Origin: Paragordius varius
Lineage: Eukaryota; Animalia; Nematomorpha
Assembly: GCA_964247055.1 (NCBI GenBank)
Contig: OZ176055.1
Span: 1,054,001-1,118,000, forward strand
Length of the DNA stretch: 64,000 nt
Reading direction: 5' to 3'
Under the pieces are notes generated by a model. The model was not told the DNA's origin, did not search any database, and saw nothing but the letters and a program-made list of their open reading frames with translations. Positions 2,352 to 60,000 of the stretch are shown here, in pieces. Every line of letters starts with the position of its first letter. Position 1 is the stretch's first letter. The position numbers and the translations under genes are program-made.

Positions 2352-14500
<12,149 letters not shown>

Positions 14501-14529
14501 TTATTGAAGTGAGCAAAAAATTTAAAGAT

Positions 14530-16702
14530 ATGAATGAATACTTTGACAATATGGATAATGGAAATGAACTTGAAAATTTAAATAAAATTTTCGATCGAAT
14601 TTTTAATTTCGTTGAGCAACTTAGGACAGGAGATACAATTAACGACGACAAAGATGTACATCAGGTGTTTATAAAATTATAATCCTAGAAAAAATGTTAT
14701 CAAATGATAAAATTGGCTGAAAATCTTCAAAATAAGATATCCTGTCTACACCTTTTGTCATCTAACGAAGAATTAAAAGAGATATCCGGTGAAAATCTAA
14801 AGTATATCTTTTATAACCTTTAAGATTTGTTCTCCTACCTGTACTAATAGGCTGTTTGCATTCAAATGTTAGGACAGGTAAGCGTCTTAACCACTTAAAA
14901 ATAGCTCAAGTAAATTTTAAATATATTCATTAGAAATTAATGCAATCTTTTATTCTTCAATGCAAAACATATCAAATTTTTGGGGATGAAACCTCCATTT
15001 TGATCAATCCAAACGCATCATCATCTAGTCCAGAAACTAATCGAAACTTGAAAATAAAAATGTTTCAAAGGGAAAAAGCCCTTGAAAATGACATAAAAAT
15101 GTTACGAAATGGGATTCGTAATAAAATACAAAATTCAAACCATTTTAAAACGGATGAAGATGCATTTGATCAAGAAATTGTATTATACTAACATAATAAT
15201 TTATTACCGTATAATTCTACTTTTTTTTCGTTTGACTACCTACCTCATTTTAATATTTTATATATTTTTTAATAAAGATTTTACTATAGTATGGATAAAA
15301 ATCTAAAGATTAATTTTAAAATAACCACTTAATTGTACTCTATTATCGTGAAAATATAAATATTTTTCAGTTGTCTTTGCTTGAAAAATGTAGCTTTTGA
15401 CTAAAAAATGTTATATATATAAATACTTTTTAATAGAAAAAGTTGTTTGTAAAGATTTTGGAACAATACACATTGTTTGCGGTGAAAGAATTACCCATTT
15501 TAACATGTAAGCAAAGCTTTTGTATTATCAATTTTAATTTAGTAGAGATCAAAATGTTAACAGAACGAAATAATGTGACAGAAGATGAGAATCTGACAGC
15601 AGAAAATAACCAAAATATGAAGACTGGACCTCAATTTTCTAATCATACCAATATCCCTTCTATAATTAAGGTAAGTTTATTTAAAATACACGTATTAATT
15701 GGTCTTTTAAAATATTAAGGTACTTTGATAGTTTAAAAGGTAAATAGGATTTTTTTTATAATCAGAGTTTAAATTTATCGTCTATCTTTATTAAATATTA
15801 AAAACTTATTGCAAAGAATTTTATATATATATATATATATTAAAAACGGGTTTATTTCGCTTCCAAAAAATGATAATCTGCAATGTTTACAAATAGTATG
15901 CAAAAGTATAATTATATAATAAATATCAAACTGAAAAAAAAAATAACGAAAAAAAACACAATTTTAACATTGTTTTAAACCGCAATTATTGATTATTAAA
16001 TAAATAGTTTAGGCCTTAAAATACGTTTCGTTTTTACACTTTTAAATTTTCCTTTTAAATCTTTTAAAGATGTTTGAATAAAAAAGATTTTTTTGCCACA
16101 TTTAGATTGATAAATTGCATACGAATCCAGAGTTAAACATTAAAAATTTTAGTACTTCGGCAGCTGTTTTTGGTAAAGGGTACCCTAGTTTACCAACTCT
16201 GACACCGGCTGAATGGTATGATCAAAGATTTAATACCGCACATAAAAATTGTGGTTCCCCTAACAATAGAAACGAGCTAATAGTTAATTCTGAAACTCAA
16301 AAAATTGATTGCGAATACAAGTTAGATGAACCTATTCATGATATTTCTGATTTGAGAATCCTGAGACGTTATGAAGATGAATGGAAAGATGGTTTTTTTT
16401 TCTTTCAAAAAATTTGAACTTTTTTATATATACTTATAAGTCAGTGCAATCATTATGATTCTAATAAAGAATTTTTTTCTACATTGTTTGAATAGATTTA
16501 TGGTATTTTTTTCGAAGAGAAAAATAGTATCCTAATAATAATCTTCCATGGTACTGTTTAATACAATCTCATTTGCAATTTATTTTGTTTAATGTTTTTA
16601 TATATCCATTCACCGATCATTTAAAAAATATAGCTATAAATTATTTATTTTTTGTTTGTAGATCATCCTCGGGGATGGGGAAACACATATCGAATGGGAT
16701 AA
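14530..16702 (+). CDS. IGBP1: Immunoglobulin-binding protein 1 / alpha4 / TAP42 (PP2A regulator), ~367 aa, 8 exons
   Basis: Exons: 14530-14664, 14689-14801, 14825-14909, 14934-15179, 15437-15506, 15543-15670, 16106-16391, 16662-16702 (1104 nt). Motifs: SNEELKEI..LK, KRLNHL, VFGKGYPSLPTLT..EWY, DEWKDDHPRGWGN.YRMG*. An in-frame stop lies upstream of ATG 14530; ATG 14551 is an alternative start. Confidence 0.93.
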
Positions 16703-16904: not shown

Positions 16905-17213
16905 ATTATTTACAATTCAATTCACTCTTAAACAATACAAATTCAGCCTTGAACAATTCAAATTCAGCCTAAAAATAGGTTGTGTTTTTGAACTAGTATA
17001 ACTTAATATTAATATGAAATATATCATTATGGTATAGTTTATTATTTTTTAGTATTATTTTAATTTATCACAAAATTTATATTTTCTAATATAGGTTATT
17101 TTTAATCTTAAAAAACATATTTTATTTTAGGGTGAATTTGAATGATTCGAGGTGAATTCGAATTGTTTAAGGGTGATTTGAATTGTTTAAGGATGAGTTA
17201 GAATTGTAAATGG
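16905..17213. mobile_element. MITE family A copy
   Basis: Multiple 21-bp subterminal units at both ends; right end AAATGG|TATA. Confidence 0.65.
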
Positions 17214-17670: not shown

Positions 17671-18923
17671 ATTATTATTGTAGCAAAGATCGTTGTCGAT
17701 TTATTGCTTTTTCGAAGGTGTATTTTCTCCAGTTTATTCGATTGTAAGTGAGTGATGTTAGCTGTTGTAAAGAGAGATTGGTTTCTTTGGTTAGGTTTTC
17801 GATCCAGCGCATCTTGCAGCCACGTTTCCTGGTTCCTCGACCTTGCCTGTCATTAGTTGAAATTCCAAGTCATTAGCTCTGGTAATGTGACCAAAGTATG
17901 ATAATTTCATTTTGAGGCACATGCCAATCAGGTGTATCTCGGGGTTTATTTTGTCAAGGATTACAGTGTTATTTATTTTGTCTTTCCAAGTGATTCGAAG
18001 TATCTTCGGCCAGCAATTTCGAAAGCGTTAATGTATTTTTCGTCTACCTTTTTTATTGTCCAGCTTTCTGATGCGTATAGCATGCTAGGAAATAGGATTT
18101 GACTAAACGGATTTTTGTTTTAAGTTTGGTGTCGTGTGATGACCATAGTTTATTATATTTTATCATTTTTGTCTTAGCAATTCCTATTCTTCTTTTGATG
18201 TCGGGGGTGCTGTTGTTAGTTGGACTGCCTAGGTAAGTGTATTGGGACACTACTTCTATTTGTTGGTTGTGAAAAGATAAGTTGTTATAGTGGTTATGAG
18301 CGTTTATAATCATGATTTTAGTTTTTTTAAAGTTGATCGTCAATCCAAATTTTTGACATTCGTTTGAGAATTCAGTTGAGAGTTTTTTGAGGTTGTCCAC
18401 TGAGTTTGACAGCAGTATAGTGTCATCAGCATAGTAAGTGATGATATAATACTGCCGGCGATGCTTATACCATTAGTTTTATCTATGTTTCGTAATACGC
18501 TTTCTATGCAGACGTTAAAAAGAGTGGGTGAACAACCAAGCATCAAAAGTTTTCCTCAAAATAATTCACAGGCGTATCTAAGGCATAATTGAAGCCGAAC
18601 TTTCTAATACCCAAGCGGGATTTAGAACCAATCGCGGATGCAGGGACATGCAGCAATATACGTTGGATATTCGAAAAACAAATTGAATTTCAGAAAAAAA
18701 TCCACATCTGCTTCATTGATTTTACAAAATTCTTCGACAGCGTGAAACACGACACGGTGTTGAAGGCACTATCTCAGATGGGAGTTTCAGATCACATTTT
18801 AAACATCATTAAATCCCTCTATTCCAATTCATCACTAAACATAAAAACCCCACACGGCACAAGTAATTGGGTACAAATGAACAACGGTTTACGACAAGGA
18901 TGCCTCCTTTCACCCACTCTTTT
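17671..18923 (-). mobile_element. 5'-inverted RTE-like LINE remnant with target-site duplication
   Basis: The plus piece 18545-18926 encodes FIDFTKFFDSV..GLRQGCLLSPTLF. The minus piece continues SPTLFN..GLTINFKKTKIM..YTYLGS..IKRRIGIAK and ends in an (AAT)n tail. TSD TAAGCATTTT at 17661-17670 and 18924-18933. Confidence 0.88.
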
Positions 18924-19125
18924 TAAGCATTTTACATGATTTAAATATTAAAGGATTTGAAAAACTTAAAATAATTGTTTGGCGCGTTTTTTTTTTCATT
19001 TATTTCTTCCAAATGGCGTAACCCTATATTTCAGTTTAAAGTCCATTATTTGCATTTATAATATTATTAGGAACCAACAGACCCCATTACACATTATGTA
19101 AAATTAAAGGCTGAAATAAGGTGTA

Positions 19126-19303: not shown

Positions 19304-21204
19304 CAGTGGTACTCAAACCGCGGGCCGCATGCGGCCCTAAGAGTCCTTTAAAATTGCCCTACGACCATATTGATAGTTAAATTATTTTTTTATTGATGAA
19401 TTTTTAAAATACGCTTAAACAAATTTTCGCTTATTTTAAAATTAATTTATTTTTTTAGATTAAATTTTGGTATTTTACCCAATTCAAAAAGTAGAAAAAA
19501 TTCCCTACACTAAAATGATTTCAAAATTTTGGCACACGTTGTTTTTGTTTCTGTATTCTATTTTCTTATTTTGAAATTTTTATTGCACTTTTTTGTATTT
19601 GAGCAAGCCTTTCAACCAAAATATACATATTCTTTTCATTGCTATCCTACCGCATTTTTTATTACTCATTCCCATAAAGTTTTTCAAATCAACATCATTT
19701 AATTTCATGTTTTTTTAGCATATCAAATTTTATTCCTATTATTTTGAAAAAATTTATATAATATTAAAAAATTCAAAAGATGACATCTAATGCTAAAAAA
19801 CGTAAATTTTCCGATGAAAATCGCTTTTTTAAAAAAGAACGGGAAGAAAAATTCTTTGTCGTTTAAAATGTGTTCTTACCTGCCTTATATGTAAGGACAA
19901 CATAATTGTAAAAAAACAATATTGAAAGACATCTCAGTGTGCGCTCTTGGTGAGATTTTGCAACGACAACAGAATCAACGAGGGATATATTTTAAATTTT
20001 TACCAATGAATAAAACCAAGAAAGGAAGTCATTTTCTCGAAATAATTAGCACTTTTTCCGATAATTATGGTATCTCTATGAAAAAAATGGTTTATATCCT
20101 CACAGATGGCTGTTCCTTTATGATTGGAATAAACAAAGGATTTATTCCCTTGAAAAACAAATATAATTTGTATAATATTTTATCATTTCACTGCTTTATT
20201 CATCAGCAAAACTTGGTTTCGCGTGTAAAAGATGAATCCAATTCAGTAATTAAAACGGTTGTGGATATAGTTCACATACGTGGCAGAAAATTCAACCGCC
20301 GTAAATTCAAAAACCTTTTGAAAGATATATACAGTGAGTTTGATGATATTCTTTTGTACACCGCTGTGAGATGGCTAAGCCTTAGCAAAATATTAAATAG
20401 ATTTTTTGTTTTAATACAGGAAATTCTATTATTTATAGAAGATGACAGAAAGTATGACGAGGTTCAATATTAACAATTGGTGGGTTTTATTAGCCTACCT
20501 TTGCGACATTACTTATAAAAGTATTTTAAGTACAAGTCTTCTAGGGAGTAAAAACCCAATTTGCTAAAATATTTGCTTTTGAAGAAAAAATAATAATATG
20601 TAAAGATATTATAAATAAAACTCTACTATATTTTCCAACACTTAAAACGATTGATGGAAAAAATATGGAATTATAGCGGTATTTAATAATAGACAATCAT
20701 AACACTTTAATCAAATGAGATGAAACTCAGATTTCAAGAATTAAGAAATATTAAAAATTGATTAAAACTCTTTGAAAATCCAAATAAATATGAAAATATA
20801 AAAAATGTGCTCAAGTTATCCTAACTGTTTTTCCCTCAACTTACACGTGTGATACAGCATATTCAAAAATGAAGTATGTCAAAAATACATACAGAAATCG
20901 CTTAACCGTTGATCATATGGACGACATATTAAGATTGGCCTGTCATGAGGCGAAACCAAATTTGTCAAAAGTTATTGGTTACTATCAAAATAAATGTTGC
21001 TATCAAAATATTTTAATTTATAAAACTAAATGGTGCGAAACGAATTTACATGCGATCAGCAAAAAATTCATTGTGCATATTTAGGGTATAAATATGTGCA
21101 TATGTGGCAAATAGCTATGGAATATTTGTCATTATAAGGTTCATGGCCCTCGAAAAAAAATATATTTTATTTGGCCCTTCACATTTTTTTGGTGAGTACC
21201 ACTG
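19304..21204 (+). mobile_element. hAT (Buster/SPIN-Charlie type) DNA transposon, defective
   Basis: TIRs CAGTGGTACTCA / TGAGTACCACTG; 8-bp TSD CCGTATAC / CTGTATAC (7 of 8 match, central TA typical of Buster elements). Confidence 0.88.
19780..20990 (+). pseudogene. Disrupted GTF2IRD2/SPIN-like hAT transposase
   Basis: Fragments MTSNAKKRKF, ILTDG, FHCFIHQQNL, VRWLSLSKILNRF, FSKMKYVKNTYRNRLTVDHMDDILRL; multiple stops and frameshifts. Confidence 0.82.
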
Positions 21205-35767: not shown

Positions 35768-36781
35768 TTAATCTCCAGCAATGGTGGTCTTCTCCGAAAC
35801 GTATATTCCGTCCAAAAAATAACGGATATCTTTCTTCTTGACCGTCGTGCACTGTTGAATCATAGCCGCTAACAATTAAATAAAAAGCAAATTTAAAATT
35901 TTATTAAAACATGTATTCAGGTGTGAATAACACACTTAATAAGTCATTAAAATATATTTTTAACAAAAACTCAGAGATATTGACAATTAAGATTGTAATA
36001 AAAAATTAAACTAAATAGCTTAAGAGATTGCGAAACTATAAACTCAAAAAACTAGTTGTAAATGGTTTAATTTGAGCTTTGTAATTAAAAATTTAGATAT
36101 ATGTAAAGTATATTACCAGATTGAGAAACTTTTTGTATATCGATGCCATCCAAAATAATTTCATCTTTTTGTTTCGTTGAAGAAACACATGTTACGTTCT
36201 CAGGTAATTTAACTTGTCGAATAAACTTTTCACCCAAAAAATTGCGGACTTCAACCACTTTGTTATCTTCCACCATGTTAATATTTATGGGGAAATGAGC
36301 ATATACCGATCGCATTTTATATCTAAAACCCTAAATAACCAGGAAAAAAAGTTAAATTAAAAACTTTTTTAAGAGTGAAAAAGAGTAAAAATTACGTCTG
36401 TAACTCCTTTAATCATATTTTTAATGTGACTGCATATCGTGCGTATAAGAGCAAGTTCCCGTTTATTTCCAAACCATTTTTCAACTTTTATCTTGTTTTT
36501 TCCAATTTTGTAAATCGATACTTGGATATGGCGAAAATCTTTGTTTAAAACACCACGAGGCCCTTTAATAGTGACGACTCTGGATTTAACTGCGGCTTCA
36601 ACTGCAAAAATATATATATTGAAGCATATTCTAATAAAAGGTATAAAATAAAATATTCTCATTGTCTGCCTTGTTATCATCATATTAACAGTAAAATATT
36701 TTAATCATTGATGATTCAATATATAAAATATAAACCATTATCCGGAATATCTACTATTTGAAAAGAATTAATCGTCTTCAT
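35768..36781 (-). CDS. RPL9: 60S ribosomal protein L9 (uL6), 188 aa, 4 exons
   Basis: Exons: 36781-36736, 36601-36396, 36330-36117, 35868-35768 (567 nt). [66 protein letters not shown]. Confidence 0.98.
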
Positions 36782-39925: not shown

Positions 39926-42900
39926 TTATATATCAATATCTATAGATTTGATTAATTGAATTGATTTTTTACCCTTATTACCATTAGCCGAAGAGTTGGG
40001 TATAATCGCAGCGCTCTTGTTATTTTCAACCGTTTTTATGCTATTACAATTGTTACTTACACTATTATGCTCTTCAAAATGTATAGTTTTAGAGACAACT
40101 ATGCCCTGTATATTCTTTTTATCACTCTTTTCAACTGCAGATCCTTCCCCATCACTTAAAACGATTCCGTTCTTTATTATTGGTTTATTGTGACAAGGGT
40201 TAATATTTATTAACGGTTGTTGGTTAATATTATTTTTTTCCGCCGCTGGTGGTCCTGGTAAATTTCGTTTTAAAACATCATTGTGCTTTATAGCTCCAAT
40301 GGCTTTAACCGATTTTCTGGATGAATTACGTTTCCCAGGAATCCGACCTAAATTTTTGCTTGCGTGTGTCGAAAGTTTTCGGATAGTTTTACTGTTTGGA
40401 CAGCACCAAAAAATTTCAGCTAAAACATGACTAAAGTTTTTGTTCATAAGACCATAAATGATTGGGTTTAGGGCACAATTAAGGAATATGAGGTAAACGG
40501 ATAACATTTCCAACCACGGTGGTACACGTAGATGGAAAAATGTTTCAACAAAATTAACCATACTGATGGGAAACCAACATGCACCAAATGTAGCCACTAT
40601 GAGTAAAATAGTTTGAGTTATAACCCTATCTTCACGTCTTCGACGTTTAAATATACCCTTTTTGCTTAATTGTCTACGTACGCTTTTCATAGTTGACTTA
40701 TATCTCTTTACTCCGTGATGCAGTATCTCTCCCGGGTCAGATCTTACTTGATGGAAAAAACTCGAGGTTGCATCATCCTCCCCAGCATCTGGATTCGAGT
40801 TTTTAGCCAACAATCCATCGGGGTCTGTGTCATTTCTGAATCGCCTAAAGGCGTAACCGGCTCTCCTAGGTGACAACGCATATCGCCATATATAATCTTT
40901 AATTTTGAAATTTGTTGCGTCACGTTGGTTATCATTGCCATCAAGTTTTTTACCATTAATATCGATTGTACCGCCATGCCTGTGTAGTAATGATATCAAT
41001 CTGTTAGGTATTACTGCGTATGATGATGATGGTGTTGTGGCTAATTTTGTGTTATTAGTCAAAGACACCAGTGGTTTGTGTGAGATAATGGGTATTTTTA
41101 TTTTCTTATTCCGATTGAAAAGCAAAGAGGCCGTTGTATCACTCAAATCGCCCAGCCGTGAGCCGGAAGAATTCGGTATATCACACAATAGATCTGAGCA
41201 ACTTCGGATCCGCTTAAATGCATGGTTTGCGTTAAACACTTGACTCATACGTTGAATCATTTCACATATTTCATAGCAAGAATCATCCTCGTCTAAACAC
41301 GAAAGTGGGGTAAGTAATAACCCATCCTGACCCTTTCCTTTACCAACAGCTGTTGTGTTCTCATCATTGTTAAATTTAACAGACGTTCCCAACAATGCAG
41401 GAGATGTGGGATTAACTGTATCATTAATAATATTACCATTATTAATACCATTATTAATGGAATGAAGTGTGTTAGGAACAAGATGTAGATGCTCAACACT
41501 ATTTAAATAAGAAAAAGGTTGATTGTCGCATTTGTCGTTAGAGGACTCCTCGTTTGACCTTGGATGTGGTCCTGCATAATTCCTATCATCCTTATCCTTC
41601 TTATCTTTTGATGCATTAATTAGATTGTAAGGCAACAACACAACATTTTTATCATCAATCTTGCTAGTCGTTTTGGTAGATATATTGCTTTCATTCCTTT
41701 CATTATTATTTAATTTTTGTTCGTCACCATAATAATTATTTATGGCAGGCATCTGATTATTATCGACCTGTTTTTTTGCCACATCCCTAATGCTATTTTT
41801 GTCATCCAGGATTAAATTTTCAAATTTAAAGGCTGGTGTTTGTTGTTTATTGGTTGATGTTGTAACAATTTTATTTATGGGTTTAACGGTGGATCTTCGG
41901 CGATTAAGATCTCGAATGTTTTGTTGACACATTTGCATTAGATCGTAATCTCTAACATCACTCTCTGATAGGGCTTTGGTATAAAGCATTCCGTGTCTGT
42001 GCAGATGTGTTAAAGGCACATATTGTGGTTTTAAAGTCAAATTATTTTTTTCTAGGTTAAAATTTTCTAAATCGGGTGATGCTGTACCCGTTTTTGCTGT
42101 TTTTATGTTAGGGCAAGCTTTCTGTTTATGTTTCATCTGATGGCTTTTTATGGCTTTTGCGACACCGTAGTCTCTAACGACAGGACTCCCACTAAAACTT
42201 GATCTATACTGACCCATGCTTATGGAATTAGCTAATAGGTATGGAGAATTATATTTTAGTTTCAAATTATCTCTCTTTGTGTATGGTAGGGTTTGCTTAG
42301 CATTATTCATTGTGTCATTTATACAATGGCCATTATTTATCTGTCGACAAAAACAGTAGTTGTTTGCATCCTTGAAGGTGGTGTTATCAACACCTCCGTG
42401 CAAACACTTTAATTCATCATCACTGAAATGTTTATTGTCATATATGGTAGAGATGCATTCAGTGTTAGGCACATTTGTGACTTCTCCTCGTTTAGGTTTA
42501 GTTAACATTATACGAGGATAAATGATGATTTGATAAAACCTACTAAGCCAAGGTTTCTTCTTCCTTTTTATATTCATTGTATTATTAGGCTTTTGTCTTT
42601 CTTGGTAGGTATTATTGTAATTATAATTATTATCGTATAAACGTGCTCCATTAGGTATTATGGAGGAATAAGGCGACAACTGGCCACAGCAATATGAACA
42701 AGGACACGTACAGCCAAAATGTAGTTTTGCATTACTGTTTCCATCTTCTATAGTCATATCATTACTGTTTTTTGCAGAAAAAGATTTTTCAGGTTGTGTC
42801 GCTACACAATTTACATGTTCATTATTATTACTATTAATTAAATTATAATTACAATTTATTTTCGTTAAGGCGCCATCATTGTCATCATTATTATGGCACT

Positions 42901-45900
42901 GTTGATGTTTGGTTAGGAAAGTTTTACGTAACAAAGTAAATGCATTATTAATGCGCAATCTTTTAGCCGTTTCCACATTCATTTTTTCTTCGTCCTCTCC
43001 CTGATTATACGTGGGATGATGTCTTTGCCTATGAGTACTCAGCTCTTTGTAGTTACTATTTTCTGATAGAGGCATTAAACTGGAGGAATTGGGATTGTCG
43101 TTATTATTCGATTTGGTGGCATCTGTTGTTGAAGAACCAGTCGTATTAGAATTATTAGTCGACGAAGATTGGGTAGAATTTGAATTAGGGTGAAGATTAT
43201 TGTTGTTTGATGTTGATGAGGTGGAAGAATTATGGGATGAACTACTACTATTATTGGTAATATTACTCCCCGTGTTCAAATTACTTATAGGATCTGATGC
43301 GACATAGTTAAAATGAACTGGGACACTTAAATACCCTTTTGAGCTATTGTCCGCCGTGTTTACAGGAGGATGAGGATAGTCAAATGGTTGCTTTTGTAAC
43401 AAAGGGTCAGTTTGATCTGACCTTTTCTCCCTAGTATTGTTTTCCTGTGCAGGGGCGTCAAAACAGCTGTTCTCAAATTCATTCTCGTTCACACGGCTAC
43501 TTTCATTAAGGAGTATCTTGATTTGTGGTAGGTGGGAAGCGTGCTGATAACCTTTCCAATCACTTTGTTTATTAGATGATTTTGATGATAATGTATCTTT
43601 GGTCTGTATTTTGCTTTTATTTTTGCTTGGGTCAAGAAGGAGGAAATACAAAGGAAGACAGCAATCACATGGTAGTAAATGAGTCCTTAATTTATCATAC
43701 GCGTAATTATTTGTCGAGTGTTGAGTTTGTTGCGTTTGAGTCGTAATGTTGGTGGTTGAGGAAGACGTTTGATTTTGAGAGTTTGAGGGCGAAATTTTAC
43801 GCAACAGAGATGTTAACAAATGGCTTGAGGTTTTGCTACTTTTAACCTCATCACTGATTGTGTTACACTTTTGAGCTGGCTGTTCTTCCACCTTGGACAT
43901 ATGAGTATGTTTTGATTTGAGATTTAGCATAGTTCCATTGCTTTTCCGATGTTTTTGTCCTGTGGTTGTTAATTGCGTTCCCGTTGTTGTCGTATTACTT
44001 TGATGAACTTTTATCCTTTTGCCGCTACTTCGAACCGTTAAAAAAATTTGGAGATAACAATAAAATATGATGCTTGAAGGGATATAAATGCCAAAACTAT
44101 GGCAAAATAGGGTGTAGGATATGTTTGTATTCCATATCAAGGTACATATAGCTTTGCCTGGCACATACGTGTATTTGCTCCAACCAAGAGTCGGTGGTAT
44201 GGATAGAAATATGCAAGCTGTCCATATACCTACATATATATATGTACTATTTACAGCAATTAACAAAAATTCTCCCTCAAACAATTCAAATTCCCCTTTG
44301 AATTCAAATTCATCCTAAAAATAAATTATGTGTTTTCGAACTAATATAACTCATTATTAATATAAAATAAATCTTTATGACATAGTTTATTATTTTTGAA
44401 TATTATTTTTATTTAAAACAAAATTATATTTTTTAAAAATATATAAAATTATTGGTAATTTTTAATCGTAAAAAACATATAATTTATTTGAGGGTGAATT
44501 TGAATTGTTTAAGGGTGAATTTGAATTGTAAATGGTATATATTAAAAACATTTTTTAGCATTTCTCAAAGATTTTGGGATATTAAAATTCTATATATAAT
44601 ATTTATAGTTAGAAATAAACTTTAATCCAAATATTATACAAGAATCTAAAGGGGTTATACATTTTGATTTTCCCGCTAAATATTATTACAAACATAAGGT
44701 CTTTCTTATTTTACATTTAACGTTAAAAACTTTAATCTTTAAAAATTTACATCATTTTAATGCAAACACTTTATTAAAAGTATGGTCAAGTAGGCATGTA
44801 TCATATATTAAATTTATTAATATTTGAAATTTTTTTAACTATGGCAATATGATAGCGGCACATCAACAATTCAATCAAAATGCAAAATGAACCAATTTTA
44901 GAAAATTCATATTATATCTAGTGGGAAGGTCATTTTTTAACAAAAACTCAAAAAATCAATAAAATATTTTTTTTAGAATTTCGTTTTCATTAGAGAATCA
45001 CAAAAAGAACCGTTTCATTATTGAATGAATGATATTGTGCAAAAAAAATTACAGGGGTTTCTACTAAATATTTATCACTACTGTTTTCAGCTATCTATTC
45101 GTCTTAATTAAGGGATAATATAATAAAAATATTTAATTGACGTGTGCGGTGAATATATTGTTTGTGGCATTTCTTTGATCTTTGTCGCTGTTTTCAATGT
45201 TTTTTGGAAAAAAATTTTAAAAATATTATTATTATTTATATAAGTCGCAATACTGATTTATCACGTATATATGTTTAATATGATTTGTTCAAATCACATT
45301 AAAATGTAATTGAAAAAAATTGGTTACATTGAACAGCCTAATTATTGGTTAAAAAAGTCTCTTAATTAGCGAATTACAAAAAATCTAGCGTTACATTCCT
45401 AACTTTTTACTTTTAGAGGACGGATATAATTTGGGTGATTGCTTAAAGCTTTAAACCTGGGTCAAGGTAAACATGCAAAAAATTTGCATACCAATAATTT
45501 GCGAAAATATGGGCACAAAGTCATAGGTGAAATTGATATTTCTTAATCAATTTTTCTAAATACAAATCTATTTAATTGGAAATAAAAAAAACTAGAGAAA
45601 ATTATTATAGTGTGTTTTGTTTGAATCTAATTAATTATCTAGGCGTAAGCCCAATATGGTTTCGAAATGCGGCCCGCCAAGCCATTTGTGTTTGGCATCC
45701 CTTCTTTAAACATATAAATAATACTATTATATTTTAATGATTGTTCCCCCCTCCCCCCCAAAAAAAAATAATTATATTATAATTTTATATTAGATAATAC
45801 AACAAAGAGCGTGTCTGAAATATAGATGGCACCAAAATCAGGTGTAAAGTTATCATTTTGAAACAAATATTTGTAAACTAATTAATTTTACTTATTACAA

Positions 45901-48900
45901 AATATATATTTGTATTTGCCACTCTATTCGATTTGACAAAAAGTTTGAGAATTCCTTATATTTTAATATTTAATGAGCCTAAAAGGCGAAATGAAATAAT
46001 TTCGAATTCGCCTAATATATATATTTTTAAAATTATTAATTGGTATTTGAAATAGCTTTGGGGTGGTGGATTACCCCAAAAGCTAATAAGTATTCTTATA
46101 TATTTAGATTTAATCGAAAAATAAGAACAAATTTTCCCCTCTGAGTTTATACTTTTTTTCTTCATGACCAATTGAAATGGCCTGGAAACCAATATTGTGA
46201 CGACTCTTTAATATTTTTAATAAAAATAAATGTGTTAAGCAAGTCAAAATAAATTGTACTATATCAACTTTAGTGTTTAAATTTAGTTTGTGTAGAATGG
46301 ATGTTATAGTAATAAAAGGGGAAAATACTTATTAAAATTCAGATTTGGTAGCAAACTAACTCTGAAAAAGTACAGGAAGAGTTCAAATTGAAAAGTAGTC
46401 TATATATATTAAATCTGAATAAAAACTGTGTTGTAAAACCTTCCTAACTCATTTTTCGACAATTTTTAAACGACATCATCCCTCTATCTATAATGATATA
46501 TTTTAAAATCAATATTTTTAATGTTTTTACAAATAAAAAATCATTTAAAGAAAATAATTAAAAAATTATATATATAGTTTTATCAAACATTCGAATTAAG
46601 ATATGATATTAAATGTAACAAAAAAAACTAATCTACCTACTGACTGCTCTAAAATAAAAAAGAGACAAAGATGGATTATTTTGTCAGTGGAGTTTACAGA
46701 TACTTAGTGATTTATCTATCTCTATCCTACATTTAAATAAACTTTGCAATTTCGGACCACCGTTTTTATTTTTAGTATAATGAGGTTAAGTTATCTAGTA
46801 TACATCATATACCTTAACTAAACCTTATACAAAAGTTACTGGATGGAATTTTTGCATATATATATTGACTTTTTTGTTGCATAAATGTTAGAGGGAAAAA
46901 ACTCTGTATATAGATAGATTTTAATTTATTCTCATTTTAAAAGGAATAGGTCCATACATTAAATTATTTTTAAAAAAACCGTTTTTGGAATGCAAGTGTA
47001 TAAAAATTAGGTTAATTCATATTGCCTTCAATTATTAGATTTCAAAGTGGTTGATGTAATAAAATTTGTTAGAAGGTCCTTGATAAATAAAAAACGTATA
47101 TTTCATAACTCATTTATTATTTTTTGCCAACAAATTTTTAATTATTGATTTTAACATCAGTTGTAGATTTAGGGGATAGGTTATAGGCTGTATAACGAAC
47201 AATTGGCAGTTTTTTCATGAGTTTAAATATTTGGGAGGACAAGAAACACCCCCCAAAAGATAATTACAAAATTAATTTAAATTTTAATTGATTGTAAAAT
47301 AACAAATCAAATTTTCCGAATATATTCTATAGATATTCCTTGTTATTTGTATCGGTAACACTTTATATAAACAACAAACTATTACTTCTATTAACCATTA
47401 TATATATACCATTTACAATTCAAATTCACCCTTGAACAATTCGAATTCTCTCTAAAATTAACTATGTGTTTTCAAATATTAAAAACTAGCTATTTTTTAT
47501 ATTTTTAAAAAATAAAATTTCGTATGATTAATAACATACTGAAAAATAATAAACCATACCATAAAGATATTATTCATTTTAATGATGATGTGTTATATGA
47601 GCTCGAAAACACATAATTTACTTTTAGGGTAAAAAAACTGTAAAGGTTAATTAACAAATGTCAAAAATTGCTGATGCTACCAAATATCAATTTAAAGCGA
47701 TTTGTAATGCATAATTCAAACATTAACAATAGTTTTTTAATTTTCTAAATTAATTTATTAATATATCTATAAAAGAATTTTTTTAAGGTTTATTTGAAAA
47801 AAATCGTTTGGTGAAATGAGAGTTTAGTAAAAATTACATTAAAAAATTACTATTCCCATATAAAGGCATAGAATGCATATTTTAAAATTTGATCCACCAT
47901 TTACCGTCCAATTTACCCTTGAACAATTCAAATTCATTCTTAAAATAAATTATGTGTTTTCGGGCGAATATAACTCATCATTAATATGAAATATATTCTT
48001 ATGGCATAGTTTTTATTTTTTCAGTATTATATTGATTTTAGACAAAAATTCACTTTTTAAAAATATAAAAAAATTCGAATTATTCGAGGGAAAATCTGAA
48101 TTGTTCAAGGGTGAATTTGAATTGTAAATGGTATCTCATAAATATTTTCTCATAACTACTTAATAATTTAGATTTGGTTCAAATATACCTTAACGCGTAG
48201 GAAAGATGTGAAAGAGTTAAAATAATTTTTTAACATGTTTTAAAATTATTTAATTGCAAATATTTTTGGTTTTAACTTGATAAAAACGATTGGCTAATAA
48301 TACTCTTAAAAATCTGATACCACACATCCCCTTAAGTTTTTTAAGTTAATTTTATGAGTATATGTTTGAAAAAAGCATATAATTTACAAAATTTATAAAA
48401 CATGTAATTAAAATCTTTTAAATAATATGAACTTTTGAACAATAAGAATTCTAATTTTAAGCCCCAATGATCAATGTTATTGTTTTGTGTTAAAATAATT
48501 TTTTTACTATTGCCAATGCTTAACTGTAAAAAAAGTTGAGAGACCCTGTAATTAAAAATATAGGATAAAAAAATCTATCCAACACAAGACAGTAAAAAAA
48601 ATAATTTGAAAAAAATGGAGTTGTAGAAAAATTTTGTCATCAGATCCATAAAAATCAATAAAATTCATCGTTTAATAATATATTATTTAATATGATATAT
48701 CTTGCAAAGCATGAAATTTAAAGATAAAAATTTAATTATATGTTTTTAAAATAATTTAATGTATTTTACATTTTGCATCTTTAAATTAGGGTTTTTTCCC
48801 TATAAAGTTGGTAACTTCTTGCTAAATAAAAAATTACTATGTTTAAAAAATGGTAAATCCCATGGAAGGCTTATTAATTTTTTCATCTTAAAAACTATCT

Positions 48901-49911
48901 GTAACTTATGTTATTCATATTATATATGTAAATATAATTTACTATTTTAAGGGGATTTTTTATACCTTTTTTCCTTTTAGAGCATTAGTATACTCACTAA
49001 AAAAACCTTTAAAGAGCCAAAAATATTTATCTTATCTCAAGGGCAGTATAAATTTCATAGCCAGTTAACACACACAAAATAGATACATCGCGAAAATCAA
49101 TAATTGATTAAGTGACCATAAAAAGGTACTTTTAGGGGGTCGCGGTGTGAGTATCTCTATGCCTGTTTTAAAGGAAAAGGGCAAACTACTTAATGACAAA
49201 ATAATTTTGATAAAATGTTGAAAATAATAGTGTTTTACCTAAAATCATGAGATTAGTGTTTCGATTTGTGAAGATAGTTACACATTGAGTTGGATGAATG
49301 ACCATGCAATATCGATTGGCTGAAATCCCAGCTAACGTAACGACAGAAGTTATGCCAAAAAGTGTGGTAGTCAGTCCATTTATTTGACACAGCGTTGGGG
49401 ACAGGACCCAATCCTTGAAGTACAGAGTTATCAGAATGAATGGACAATTGATAAGAGCTGCCAGTAAATTACAAATGGCCAAACTTAGTATAAATTTATT
49501 GGGTATAGTTTTTAGCGATTTACGACTCATGATTATCCAACTGATAAACCCGTTACCCCCAACCGTCGTAATCATAATTGCAAACATAAAAGTTAGGCGA
49601 AGTAACCAGTTAACTGTGTTTGGTGTACTAATCGTGATGGAATCAATTTTTTTCTCCGGTAAGTATACTGATGATGACAAATTTGTCCAATTCAATCTGA
49701 GATTAAAATTGTTCGCAATACGATTAATGCTGTTAGAATAATTGAATGTATGTCCAAAATGCTGGAGATCAGTGTGATTAACCCTAATACGCTGATAATG
49801 TGAAAAATTTTGATAGTGTGTATAGTTTTGATTATTTTGGATGATAAAGTTTGATGGTGTAGCAAAGGTTGGTGTTGTGATAGAATGTGTTTGAAGTGAA
49901 TATGTTATCAT
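39926..49911 (-). CDS. Orphan class A (rhodopsin-like) GPCR, GPR161/GPR135-like TM core, ~1658 aa with ~1130-aa ICL3
   Basis: Exon 1 49911-49239 (TM1-3: GN, NKFILSLAICN, C3.25, ANRY) is spliced in phase 1 to exon 2 44229-39926 (IW, PPTLGWS, TM5, CWFP, NPIIY, helix 8). There is no Asp3.32 (not aminergic) and no Lys7.43 (not an opsin). Subfamily assignment is from recalled similarity only. Confidence 0.92.
44247..44535. mobile_element. MITE family A copy next to the GPCR exon-2 acceptor
   Basis: 21-bp subterminal units; right end GTAAATGG|TATA. Confidence 0.65.
47409..47648. mobile_element. MITE family A copy
   Basis: TATA|CCATTTACAATTCAAATTCACCC left end; the right end is decayed. Confidence 0.6.
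47897..48131. mobile_element. MITE family A copy
   Basis: CCATTTAC...GTAAATGG|TA. Confidence 0.62.
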
Positions 49912-57029: not shown

Positions 57030-60000
57030 ATGGATAAAAGGGAACAAAAATTAGAGTATTACGAAAAACTTTTAAATGAAACCATAATTAAAAATCAAGT
57101 TTAAATTTTATGATGTCTAAAAATAGGATCCTATTACATCATTAATTCCATCCTTACCAAATTCATTAGATGCTTGGGTACGAGATAATTGTTATGCTGT
57201 ACTGTCGATATGGGCCCTTTCACTTGCCTATAAAAAGTCTGCGGATCAGGACGATGATAAAACTAAGACATATGAATTGGAACAAAAATGTGTTAAACTT
57301 ATGAGAGCCCTGTTAACATGTTTCCTAAAACAAAAAGATAAATTGGAAAAGTTTAAATATAGTCAGGTGACTTTTTAATTTTTATAAACTCTGTAGAATT
57401 CAAAAGATTCATTTCACGCTAAATTTAATGCCCATACATGTGATACGATTGTTGAGGATTTACAATGGGGACATCTTCAAATTGATGCCGTCTCACTTTA
57501 TCTTCTAATTTTGGCCCAGCTAACATCATCTGGTTTTATTTTGGTTTTTTGGATAAAATTTAATAAATATTAATATTTTTAGCGTTCAACTTTTTTTGCA
57601 TATAAAAATTTTCAATGCTATATATATGGAATAAATATGGTATTTATAAAATTAAACGGTTATGTTAGGCAAGTTTTCTACACCGATATTACAATTAAAA
57701 TATAGAAATATTTTTCAACCAAATAGTTTACTACTAAAATTTATATATGTTGGATTAATTTTGCCTTGATTATTTAACAAGTATGTTTATTTGTATTCGT
57801 ATGGTCAATCTTGCAAATCAACTCAAGGAATACACTCTAATATCTAGATGTAATTTTCACCAATCTTGTCTAGATCAGTCAATAATGAGTATCTTATTTA
57901 TTTATTCGTTCAAATTTTGGGGGCGTAGTCATTTTTGTTTTAGATCCTATATCTTTTTGATTTCTGCCATGTTTTGTGAGGATAGTCTAGTAAAATTTCT
58001 CTGAATCTAATTAATAATGTTTTTAAAATATTTTCATCCGCGCGTTCAATATGGTCTTTAACCAACTTACTCATTGGATTATATGATCAAATGCGTTATA
58101 AATTGGGATTTAAATTGTATTTACTCATTTATATTTGGTTTGATGAATCAAGGATTGCTTGTTTTAAGGATTCTATCTTCCATTCGTAAGAATTTAATTT
58201 TTATTAGTTTTACTCAGTGGATAGGTTTTTGTGTGCCGTGTGTAACAACTCACCGTGTCGCTATAGTGTATATCTTTGCTTTAGTCTTAAGCTTTATTTT
58301 TTATTATTTGCCACTGTCATAATGATATATATATGATTGAGAATGAGTTTTTAGTAGAGTAGATTTTTATATTTTCAAAGTTATGTATGTACAAAATTGT
58401 CTTGGGATGTGTTTATGAATATGAGTGTTAAATCTTAGCCAACAAAATCTGCCACGAGTTTTTCTGTTCTTTTATCGCCTGTAATTCTATCACGTTGAAA
58501 GGTAGAGCGGATTTAAAAAGGAAATTTTGAGACAAGCCGGAATTTATTTGAAGTTTTTGAATAAAGTTAATTATAGGCGGTTTTTATTTTACTATAGCTA
58601 TTGTGGTAAAGATTCTTAAATGCTATAATTAGCCATTCTTTACAAACCCTTTCTTCTTAAGAGCATCCATGATATTACAGTAAAAATCTAAATTATACGG
58701 ACAACATATAAAGACAAAATTTTTTTTCAAAAGAACGCTGAACTTTATAACCTTGATTGTTTAATAACTATTGTTTTTAAATTACAAAATATGAAATAGA
58801 GATGTAAATTGGTAACACAATCATTTTATATTTTTAATTGTAATAAATTATTTATATAGGAAGGTTTAAAAATGGGGTTGTCTTTCGAAAAATTTATATT
58901 TTAACGTTTATATATACAATTTCAATTTTTATTATAGTGTAATGAATACACTATTAGAAATCTTTTTCCCAGGTCAACAAAGGTGTAATGAAGTTGGATC
59001 TAAACATACCATCTATTATATACTTTTTTAATATTTAATAAATAATTTTTAAGTTTATCGAACAGAATATCATATATTATCCTTAGTCTAGATTTTTAAT
59101 AGGCCTTTAAAGGCCTGTATGACATATATATCGCCTTTCCTTTTGTAAATTGGTATTTGATAAAAAAATTTCCATTCATCACGGAGTTTATCTGTTTCAA
59201 CTTTGGATAAATTAAAATATAGAATTATTTAAGAAAGTATTGGTTTTAGAATAAATTTCAGCAAAATCTAAATTATAATCAAATTAATTGGTAAAAAAAT
59301 ACTTTATGTAACATTAGTAGTTTTTATCAAAATTTATGTCAGCATTTTCATATAATTAATAGTCCATGGATGCCCATTTTTTTTTATTTTTGTGTGACAA
59401 TTATTTTTTTCATGTTATAATAATAGGTATGCAAATAATATTTACGTTGGATGAGGTATCTTTCATACAAAATATGGTATTTTACATTGAAGAAGCTTAT
59501 CGGATTGCTGTAAGTAACTTTATTACAAAAATTTAATCATAAAAGTTTTGATAATCTTTCAGCAATAATGATATTAATTGGGGAAAATGATAGATAATTT
59601 TGGTTATGAAAAAATACTAAAATTTGATCGCCAACTTTTATAATTTTACGATTCTAAGTGCAATGAATCATTTTTTTATAATTATTCTATTGATTTTAAC
59701 ATGACGGTACATTGATATCAGTAAATGCATGAAACTTTATTAGTTTACCATTAAGATTGACAATAAAAATTGAAATATGAAACCTAAAAATTAATAGGCA
59801 ATTTTTTTTTAGAAAACAAATACATAGAATTTTCATATACCTTGTTTTTTTTACATTGTACAATATAATTACGAATTTGAAATATGTATAATTGGATCTA
59901 AACAATTTACATTTATTTCTATAAATTATTTTACAACCCAAAACACAAAATGTTTCATTTAAATAATCAAGGTTTTATTGTTCCTTTTGGTTCTGAATCA

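Follow-up and report, generated by a model that had tools for sequence, protein, structure and literature searches.

In a survey of 51 animal genomes (Hadjez et al., September 2026, PMC13644364), introns of <30 bp were found in the myxobolid Myxozoa and in Dicyema japonicum, and the survey states that no other animal among those examined has such introns, and that further lineages are to be expected. The myxobolid introns have a median length of 22-27 bp, and in both groups the splice signals are reduced to GTa...AG; the survey tentatively ties intron shrinkage to parasitism, small body and reduced genomes. A human intron fails when fewer than 46 nt separate its donor from its branchpoint (PMC11291888). 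The present study focused on three consecutive segments of 24, 23 and 24 nt in the putative IGBP1/TAP42 gene of a gordiid horsehair worm, Paragordius varius, which lies in a 64,000-nt stretch of contig OZ176055.1 (assembly GCA_964247055.1, positions 1,054,001 to 1,118,000), referred to here as the window. The three segments are very probably (a probability of about 0.8) genuine, constitutively removed, U2-type GT-AG spliceosomal introns, the first three of the gene. In this window they are members of a group of micro-introns, 23-31 nt long and close to the start codon, that share their genes and their genome with introns ranging from 59 nt to 5 kb.

The window is ~25% GC and carries animal genes in the standard genetic code. 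This code, the animal genes and the long introns led to the rejection of a ciliate source; Dicyema was rejected for its 36.7% GC and its uniformly short introns. The gene model for IGBP1 is as follows, with profile positions referring to the Pfam TAP42 profile.

14530-14664, plus strand: exon 1, 45 codons from the ATG at 14530, the frame open up to intron 1
14665-14688, plus strand: micro-intron 1, 24 nt, GT..AG, phase 0; retention leads to a stop at codon 51
14689-14801, plus strand: exon 2, profile positions 32-65, 20.8 bits, E = 2.5e-4
14802-14824, plus strand: micro-intron 2, 23 nt, GT..AG, phase 2; retention shifts the frame and leads to a stop at codon 90
14825-14909, plus strand: exon 3, profile positions 67-95, 11.3 bits
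14910-14933, plus strand: micro-intron 3, 24 nt, GT..AG, phase 0; retention leads to a stop at codon 119
14934-15179, plus strand: exon 4, profile positions 97-180, 35.2 bits, E = 1e-8
15180-15436, plus strand: intron 4, 257 nt, with a high-copy repeat inside at ~15344-15430
15437-15506, plus strand: exon 5, placed by frame and junctions
15507-15542, plus strand: possible intron 5, 36 nt, GTAAGC..AG, in frame and without a stop
15543-15670, plus strand: exon 6, placed by the gene model
15671-16105, plus strand: intron 6, 435 nt
16106-16391, plus strand: exon 7, profile positions 272-343, 26.0 bits
16392-16661, plus strand: intron 7, 270 nt
16662-16702, plus strand: exon 8, ending in the stop codon

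The eight exons form a single ATG-to-TAA frame of 367 codons, and the splice sites of all seven introns are canonical. Retained singly, each intron introduces a premature stop apart from the 36-nt segment at 15507-15542, which could equally be intron or coding sequence, as its retention keeps the frame open. The profile (PF04177) was searched exon by exon, with a curated cut-off of 26 bits that exons 4 and 7 reach and with which exons 2 and 3 are collinear; the score summed over the IGBP1 exons is ~93 bits. Judged by these profile matches, the gene is IGBP1/TAP42 (alpha4). The matches of exons 2, 3 and 4 follow one another across micro-introns 2 and 3 with nothing lost and nothing added, and the two missing profile positions, 66 and 96, are the split or junction codons at introns 2 and 3. 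The first-pass annotation of this DNA had given the same coordinates, lengths and GT-AG ends, together with an alternative donor at 14656 that exists and would produce a 33-nt form of intron 1. It had also proposed that each segment brings in a stop if retained and that removal regains the alignment to alpha4, and both proposals are borne out by the stops and the profile positions listed above.

Some removal of this kind is needed to open the frame. A brute-force search over GT-AG introns of 15-120 nt found no solution with just one or two of them. In the base composition of the window, GT and AG ends are expected on one given insert with p ~0.0017, and GT..AG on three inserts would arise by chance at ~1e-7, with three registers allowed for each. 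The sequence supports the view that the three segments act as obligatory GT-AG introns, which would then be absent from the mRNA. A screen for micro-introns by open reading frames gave no discrimination, with 73 GT-AG candidates vs 71-143 for scrambled dinucleotide controls.

Several observations weigh against this view. The brute-force search, over the same size range, found 112 other three-intron GT-AG combinations that keep the frame open, so that the first-pass remark that alternative donors and acceptors, as tried for the 23-nt segment, run into stops has to be given up. An open frame is therefore insufficient alone, and the micro-intron model was chosen for its homology to the TAP42 profile, since every one of the 112 alternatives removes residues that are matched to it. 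These combinations lend weight to a different explanation, that the gene has longer GT-AG introns or skips exons (e.g., 62-116 nt around 14744-14904) and makes a protein without part of exons 2-3, and it may be added in its favor that the shortest introns of RPL9, both in this genome and in the related hairworm Gordionus, are 46-65 nt. However, each longer option loses gap-free TAP42 positions from 32-95, including the conserved L-K-(Y/F)-x-L-(V/L)-P, and the 23-31-nt solution recurs, with profile continuity, in RUVBL2 and PHKA, two other genes of the window, which makes longer introns at this locus quite improbable.

Intron 1 is the least secure of the three, with the open frame as the evidence for its removal. 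Taken alone, exon 1 matches nothing in Pfam, and exon 2 has an in-frame ATG at 14704; intron 1 could sit in the 5' untranslated region (UTR), be 33 nt long, or go unused. We infer that exon 1 is required for the ~31 profile positions that lie N-terminal to exon 2. Comparative and expression data also count on the negative side. Word-indexed protein searches for an IGBP1 orthologue with exon 4 and exon 7 were empty. An exhaustive search of exon 4 against cluster representatives gave no homologue, within a single-exon length window that excludes full-length relatives, and PDB sequences, searched by phmmer for exons 2, 3 and 4, gave nothing relevant. X4 and X6, two putative RNA runs under the same species label, gave nothing on the locus even at 80% likeness, and none of the words of the stretch was present in five putative RNA runs with that label. 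Three runs contain the stretch, none of them recorded as RNA, and two of these (X1 and X3) are DNA. Finally, no branch-site motif emerges from the eight sequences compared: A residues occur at several places 5-15 nt before the AG, there is no space for a pyrimidine tract, and no motif is common to the eight.

The absence of the locus from the putative RNA runs, and a divergent protein whose exons, taken singly, had no homologue in either of two very large protein searches, would both suit a decaying or unexpressed copy, with inserts that bear GT and AG ends by chance. Such a copy would not be expected to retain an intact 367-codon frame, canonical sites at seven introns and a summed TAP42 score of ~93 bits, nor does the ~1e-7 chance of the three pairs of ends speak for it. 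Further evidence came from run X1, which carries a second haplotype at about equal depth. Among the variants listed for this haplotype there are at least 19 exonic differences; of the 19 counted, nine are synonymous and none is nonsense, which, although the numbers are small, points to a constrained gene rather than a pseudogene. The same list includes a G>A change at position +3 of intron 1 and a C>T change at 14928 in intron 3, but shows no variant at the GT or AG ends and no indel in the three micro-introns; the listed indels fall in the long introns and 3' of the stop codon. Taken together, this makes a decayed copy very improbable.

The segments themselves are present in genomic DNA. Contigs of run X1 span 14668-14927 and those of run X3, which comes from a separate study with a separate organism label, span 14524-14771, both with zero differences. 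Run X1 may be the source sample of the assembly. The occurrence of the segments in DNA contigs of two studies rules out an assembly error. It also bears on the idea that the segments are eliminated from somatic DNA, in the manner of ciliates, rather than spliced from RNA. The size of 23-31 nt resembles that of the shortest eliminated sequences of Paramecium, and DNA elimination occurs during the development of some nematodes. Nevertheless, the ends of the segments are GT..AG rather than TA..TA, and no joint over them was reported in the two runs whose DNA contigs contain them, so that elimination is extremely improbable and removal by the spliceosome is the reading retained here.

Two further features of the locus were noted in run X1. 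Between 14300 and 16900 its haplotypes differ by ~1.5% in the 5' exons and by ~11% at 15561-15810, and the long introns carry many small indels; this divergence is either very high heterozygosity or a pooled sample. Contig depth rises from ~450 to ~9,200 at 15344-15430, within intron 4 of IGBP1, where many contigs end or branch; this segment looks like a very high-copy short repeat.

Micro-introns occur in two other conserved genes of the window. Their introns, and the longest intron tabulated, are given below in the direction of transcription of each gene.

14433-14491, minus strand: RUVBL2 intron 1, 59 nt, apparently after a coding exon of 9 nt (three codons), the start codon being placed from the sequence alone
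14356-14383, minus strand: RUVBL2 intron 2, 28 nt, GT..AG
14269-14299, minus strand: RUVBL2 intron 3, 31 nt, GT..AG; the next exon (14200-14268) matches positions 23-44 of the TIP49 profile
57099-57126, plus strand: PHKA intron 1, 28 nt, GT..AG; the PHKA ATG is at 57030
57367-57396, plus strand: PHKA intron 2, 30 nt, GT..AG; the flanking exons match Pfam GH15 positions 33-96 and 99-141, contiguous
44230-49238, minus strand: intron of a rhodopsin-type G protein-coupled receptor (GPCR) gene, 5,009 nt, with a GT donor after an exon ending LMILG and an AG acceptor before IWTACIFLSIPP

Across IGBP1, RUVBL2 and PHKA there are seven micro-introns of 23-31 nt: six of ≤30 nt (24, 23, 24, 28, 28 and 30 nt) and another of 31 nt. 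Each is among the first three introns of its gene, and the donors of all seven lie 69-380 nt from the ATG. Longer introns are found in the same genes and around them, in keeping with the first-pass statement that this genome also processes long ones: 5,009 nt in the GPCR gene and 134-435 nt in others. The introns of RUVBL2 3' of the 31-nt one are roughly 500-1,300 nt, as estimated from exon pieces, and those of RPL9 (35771-36781) are 134, 65 and 248 nt. Half of the 16 introns tabulated are ≤36 nt and the other half 59-5,009 nt, and once the later introns of RUVBL2 and PHKA (~500-1,800 nt, estimated) are added, the median intron of the window is well above 100 nt rather than below 30 nt. Base composition does not separate the two sizes, with 12-24% GC in micro-introns and long introns alike vs 31.5% in the exons of IGBP1. 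Nor do the splice sites: in this small sample the donors are weak in short and long introns alike (GTG, GTA or GTT followed by AT-rich sequence), and the acceptors are mostly TAG.

With signals so minimal, and with an early stop resulting from each retained intron, the micro-introns could be real and yet be spliced inefficiently or conditionally, retention and the premature stop acting as a brake on expression, as in Microsporidia, whose short introns have a median splicing efficiency of ~25% as cited in the survey (PMC13644364). But IGBP1, RUVBL2 and PHKA are housekeeping genes, which need a full-length product, and three introns of low efficiency in series would leave very little mRNA. A conditional brake is improbable for these reasons, and constitutive splicing is the favored interpretation.

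If the segments are constitutively spliced, the major spliceosome would cut them as ordinary GT-AG introns, and would recognize them by little beyond a GT(a/t/g) at the 5' end and a (t)AG at the 3' end. The branch adenosine would lie ~10-16 nt from the donor and the pyrimidine tract would be dispensed with. A whole IGBP1 micro-intron is about half of the human minimal donor-to-branchpoint distance (PMC11291888), and U1 and U2/SF3b would lack the room to bind next to each other in the human manner. Given the human minimum of 46 nt for that distance, the early complexes would not be arranged as in the textbook picture. Copies that remain unspliced would hit a premature stop and presumably be discarded. 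The restriction to gene starts is a matter for speculation: these introns may depend on help that is limited to the vicinity of the cap or promoter, or promoter-proximal introns may be shielded from transposon insertion and have shrunk to a minimum. The first of these ideas can be extended to a position-dependent regime in hairworms, in which introns of ~21-31 nt would be removable only within the first few hundred nucleotides of a transcript, and ordinary introns would be used elsewhere. Neither U2AF nor a pyrimidine tract would be needed, and help could come, for example, from the cap-binding complex or from the polymerase while it is close to the promoter. This proposal is doubtful, and we offer it tentatively.

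The affinity of the genome with hairworms (Nematomorpha) is shown by sequence comparison of one gene, RPL9, exon 2 of which has 84% identity to the protein of the Montseny horsehair worm, Gordionus sp. m RMFG-2023; matches from a copepod and a rotifer come next at 66-70%. The window thus belongs to a hairworm different from that one. RPL9 carries its three introns at the same positions in Gordionus (locus L001, 10001-10779) and in this genome. Gordionus montsenyensis (GCA_954871325.2) belongs to the same phylum and is the nearest relative found, but its shortest introns are 46-47 nt, as against 23-31 nt here, in RPL9, the gene examined in Gordionus. RPL9 introns are in fact longer in this genome than in Gordionus (134, 65 and 248 vs 116, 46 and 47 nt), so shortening in this genome has not been uniform. 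From the 46-47-nt RPL9 introns of Gordionus it would appear that short introns run in the phylum. Starting from the Gordionus RPL9 gene, synteny extended to RPL9 alone within 10 kb on either side, and on the relevant side no gene was called. The published Gordionus genome is 26.9% GC (Gordionus genome preprint), and the word intron is absent from that preprint. Our search of the literature on Nematomorpha or hairworms and introns found no statement on intron length; a Current Biology article about the genomes of two further hairworms lay outside the search.

Other features of the window were recorded in passing. RUVBL2 on the minus strand and IGBP1 on the plus strand are arranged head to head, with 29 nt between their start codons at 14500 and 14530 (14498-14532). 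So short a gap can hardly accommodate a shared promoter together with a 5' UTR for each gene. The two transcripts may overlap, their leaders may be almost missing, or a leader may be added by trans-splicing. An AG is found 20 nt upstream of the IGBP1 ATG. Exon 2 of the rhodopsin-type receptor gene (39926-44284, minus strand) is one open frame of ~1,450 codons, the greater part of which is a low-complexity insert, rich in asparagine and serine, within the third intracellular loop. Introns and intergenic DNA contain dispersed short arrays of a 21-nt unit (10948-11001, 11843-11959, 16912-16974, 17125-17207, 44487-44529 and 48070-48125), and the arrays at 16912 and 17125 are oppositely oriented, like a MITE-like element (miniature inverted-repeat transposable element) with repeat-array ends. 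Fragments of LINE-like reverse transcriptase and hAT-type transposase occur at 5474-7457, 18053-18939 and 19922-21084, in gene-poor DNA between IGBP1 and RPL9. An Rfam search of the window found zero RNA genes.

A macroscopic animal with a repeat-rich genome that removes introns of 23-24 nt and of 5 kb with the same machinery would, if this is borne out, narrow the true requirements of intron recognition. That the micro-introns keep to gene starts and have long introns full of transposons as neighbors is a poor fit to genome reduction and points to a positional cause; if the regime is indeed position-dependent, extreme intron shortening would be uncoupled from genome compaction. There are also practical consequences. 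Gene finders and read aligners with an intron minimum of 30-40 nt will break such genes, and the warning given about annotation pipelines in the first-pass annotation was a reasonable one. BUSCO completeness of the published hairworm genome is 71.6%, and part of the deficit may come from mis-annotation of micro-introns. Under a position-dependent regime, the 'loss' of universal genes reported from hairworms would in part be an annotation artefact. The description of these introns as an undescribed system goes too far, as animal introns of <30 bp have already been published for myxobolids and Dicyema japonicum (PMC13644364).

The hairworm introns can be set beside four described systems. The myxobolids (Henneguya salminicola, Thelohanellus kitauei and Myxobolus; PMC13644364) are alike in having GT-AG introns of 20-30 nt with signals of about GTa...AG and apparently no pyrimidine tract, in the placing of short introns between conserved exons, in being a parasitic lineage, and in having longer introns in the same genomes. 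They are Cnidaria, however, with compact genomes of 75-190 Mb in which short introns are the majority, whereas the hairworm is an ecdysozoan in which micro-introns are a minority confined to first introns, most introns of the repeat-rich window being 130 nt to 5 kb. Dicyema japonicum (mean intron length 38 bp; Lu et al. 2019, PMC6736024) also has many introns of <30 nt and reduced splice-site motifs, but its genome is 67.5 Mb with 36.7% GC and its introns are short throughout, unlike the mixture of short and long introns in the hairworm window at ~25% GC. Ciliates (Paramecium, ~25 nt; Stentor, 15-16 nt; PMC9505925, 10.1101/2021.08.05.455221) resemble the hairworm in intron size, in the premature stops that follow retention and in a canonical spliceosome, and differ in being unicellular, with nearly all introns tiny and no kilobase introns alongside. 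The ultra-short human introns of 43-65 nt, which depend on SPF45/RBM17 and are independent of U2AF (10.1101/784868), provide the parallel that short introns can need a modified recognition of the 3' splice site. On this comparison, horsehair worms are a probable third animal lineage with introns of <30 nt, one that differs from the two published lineages in that its micro-introns are a start-proximal minority within a repeat-rich genome that also holds long introns.

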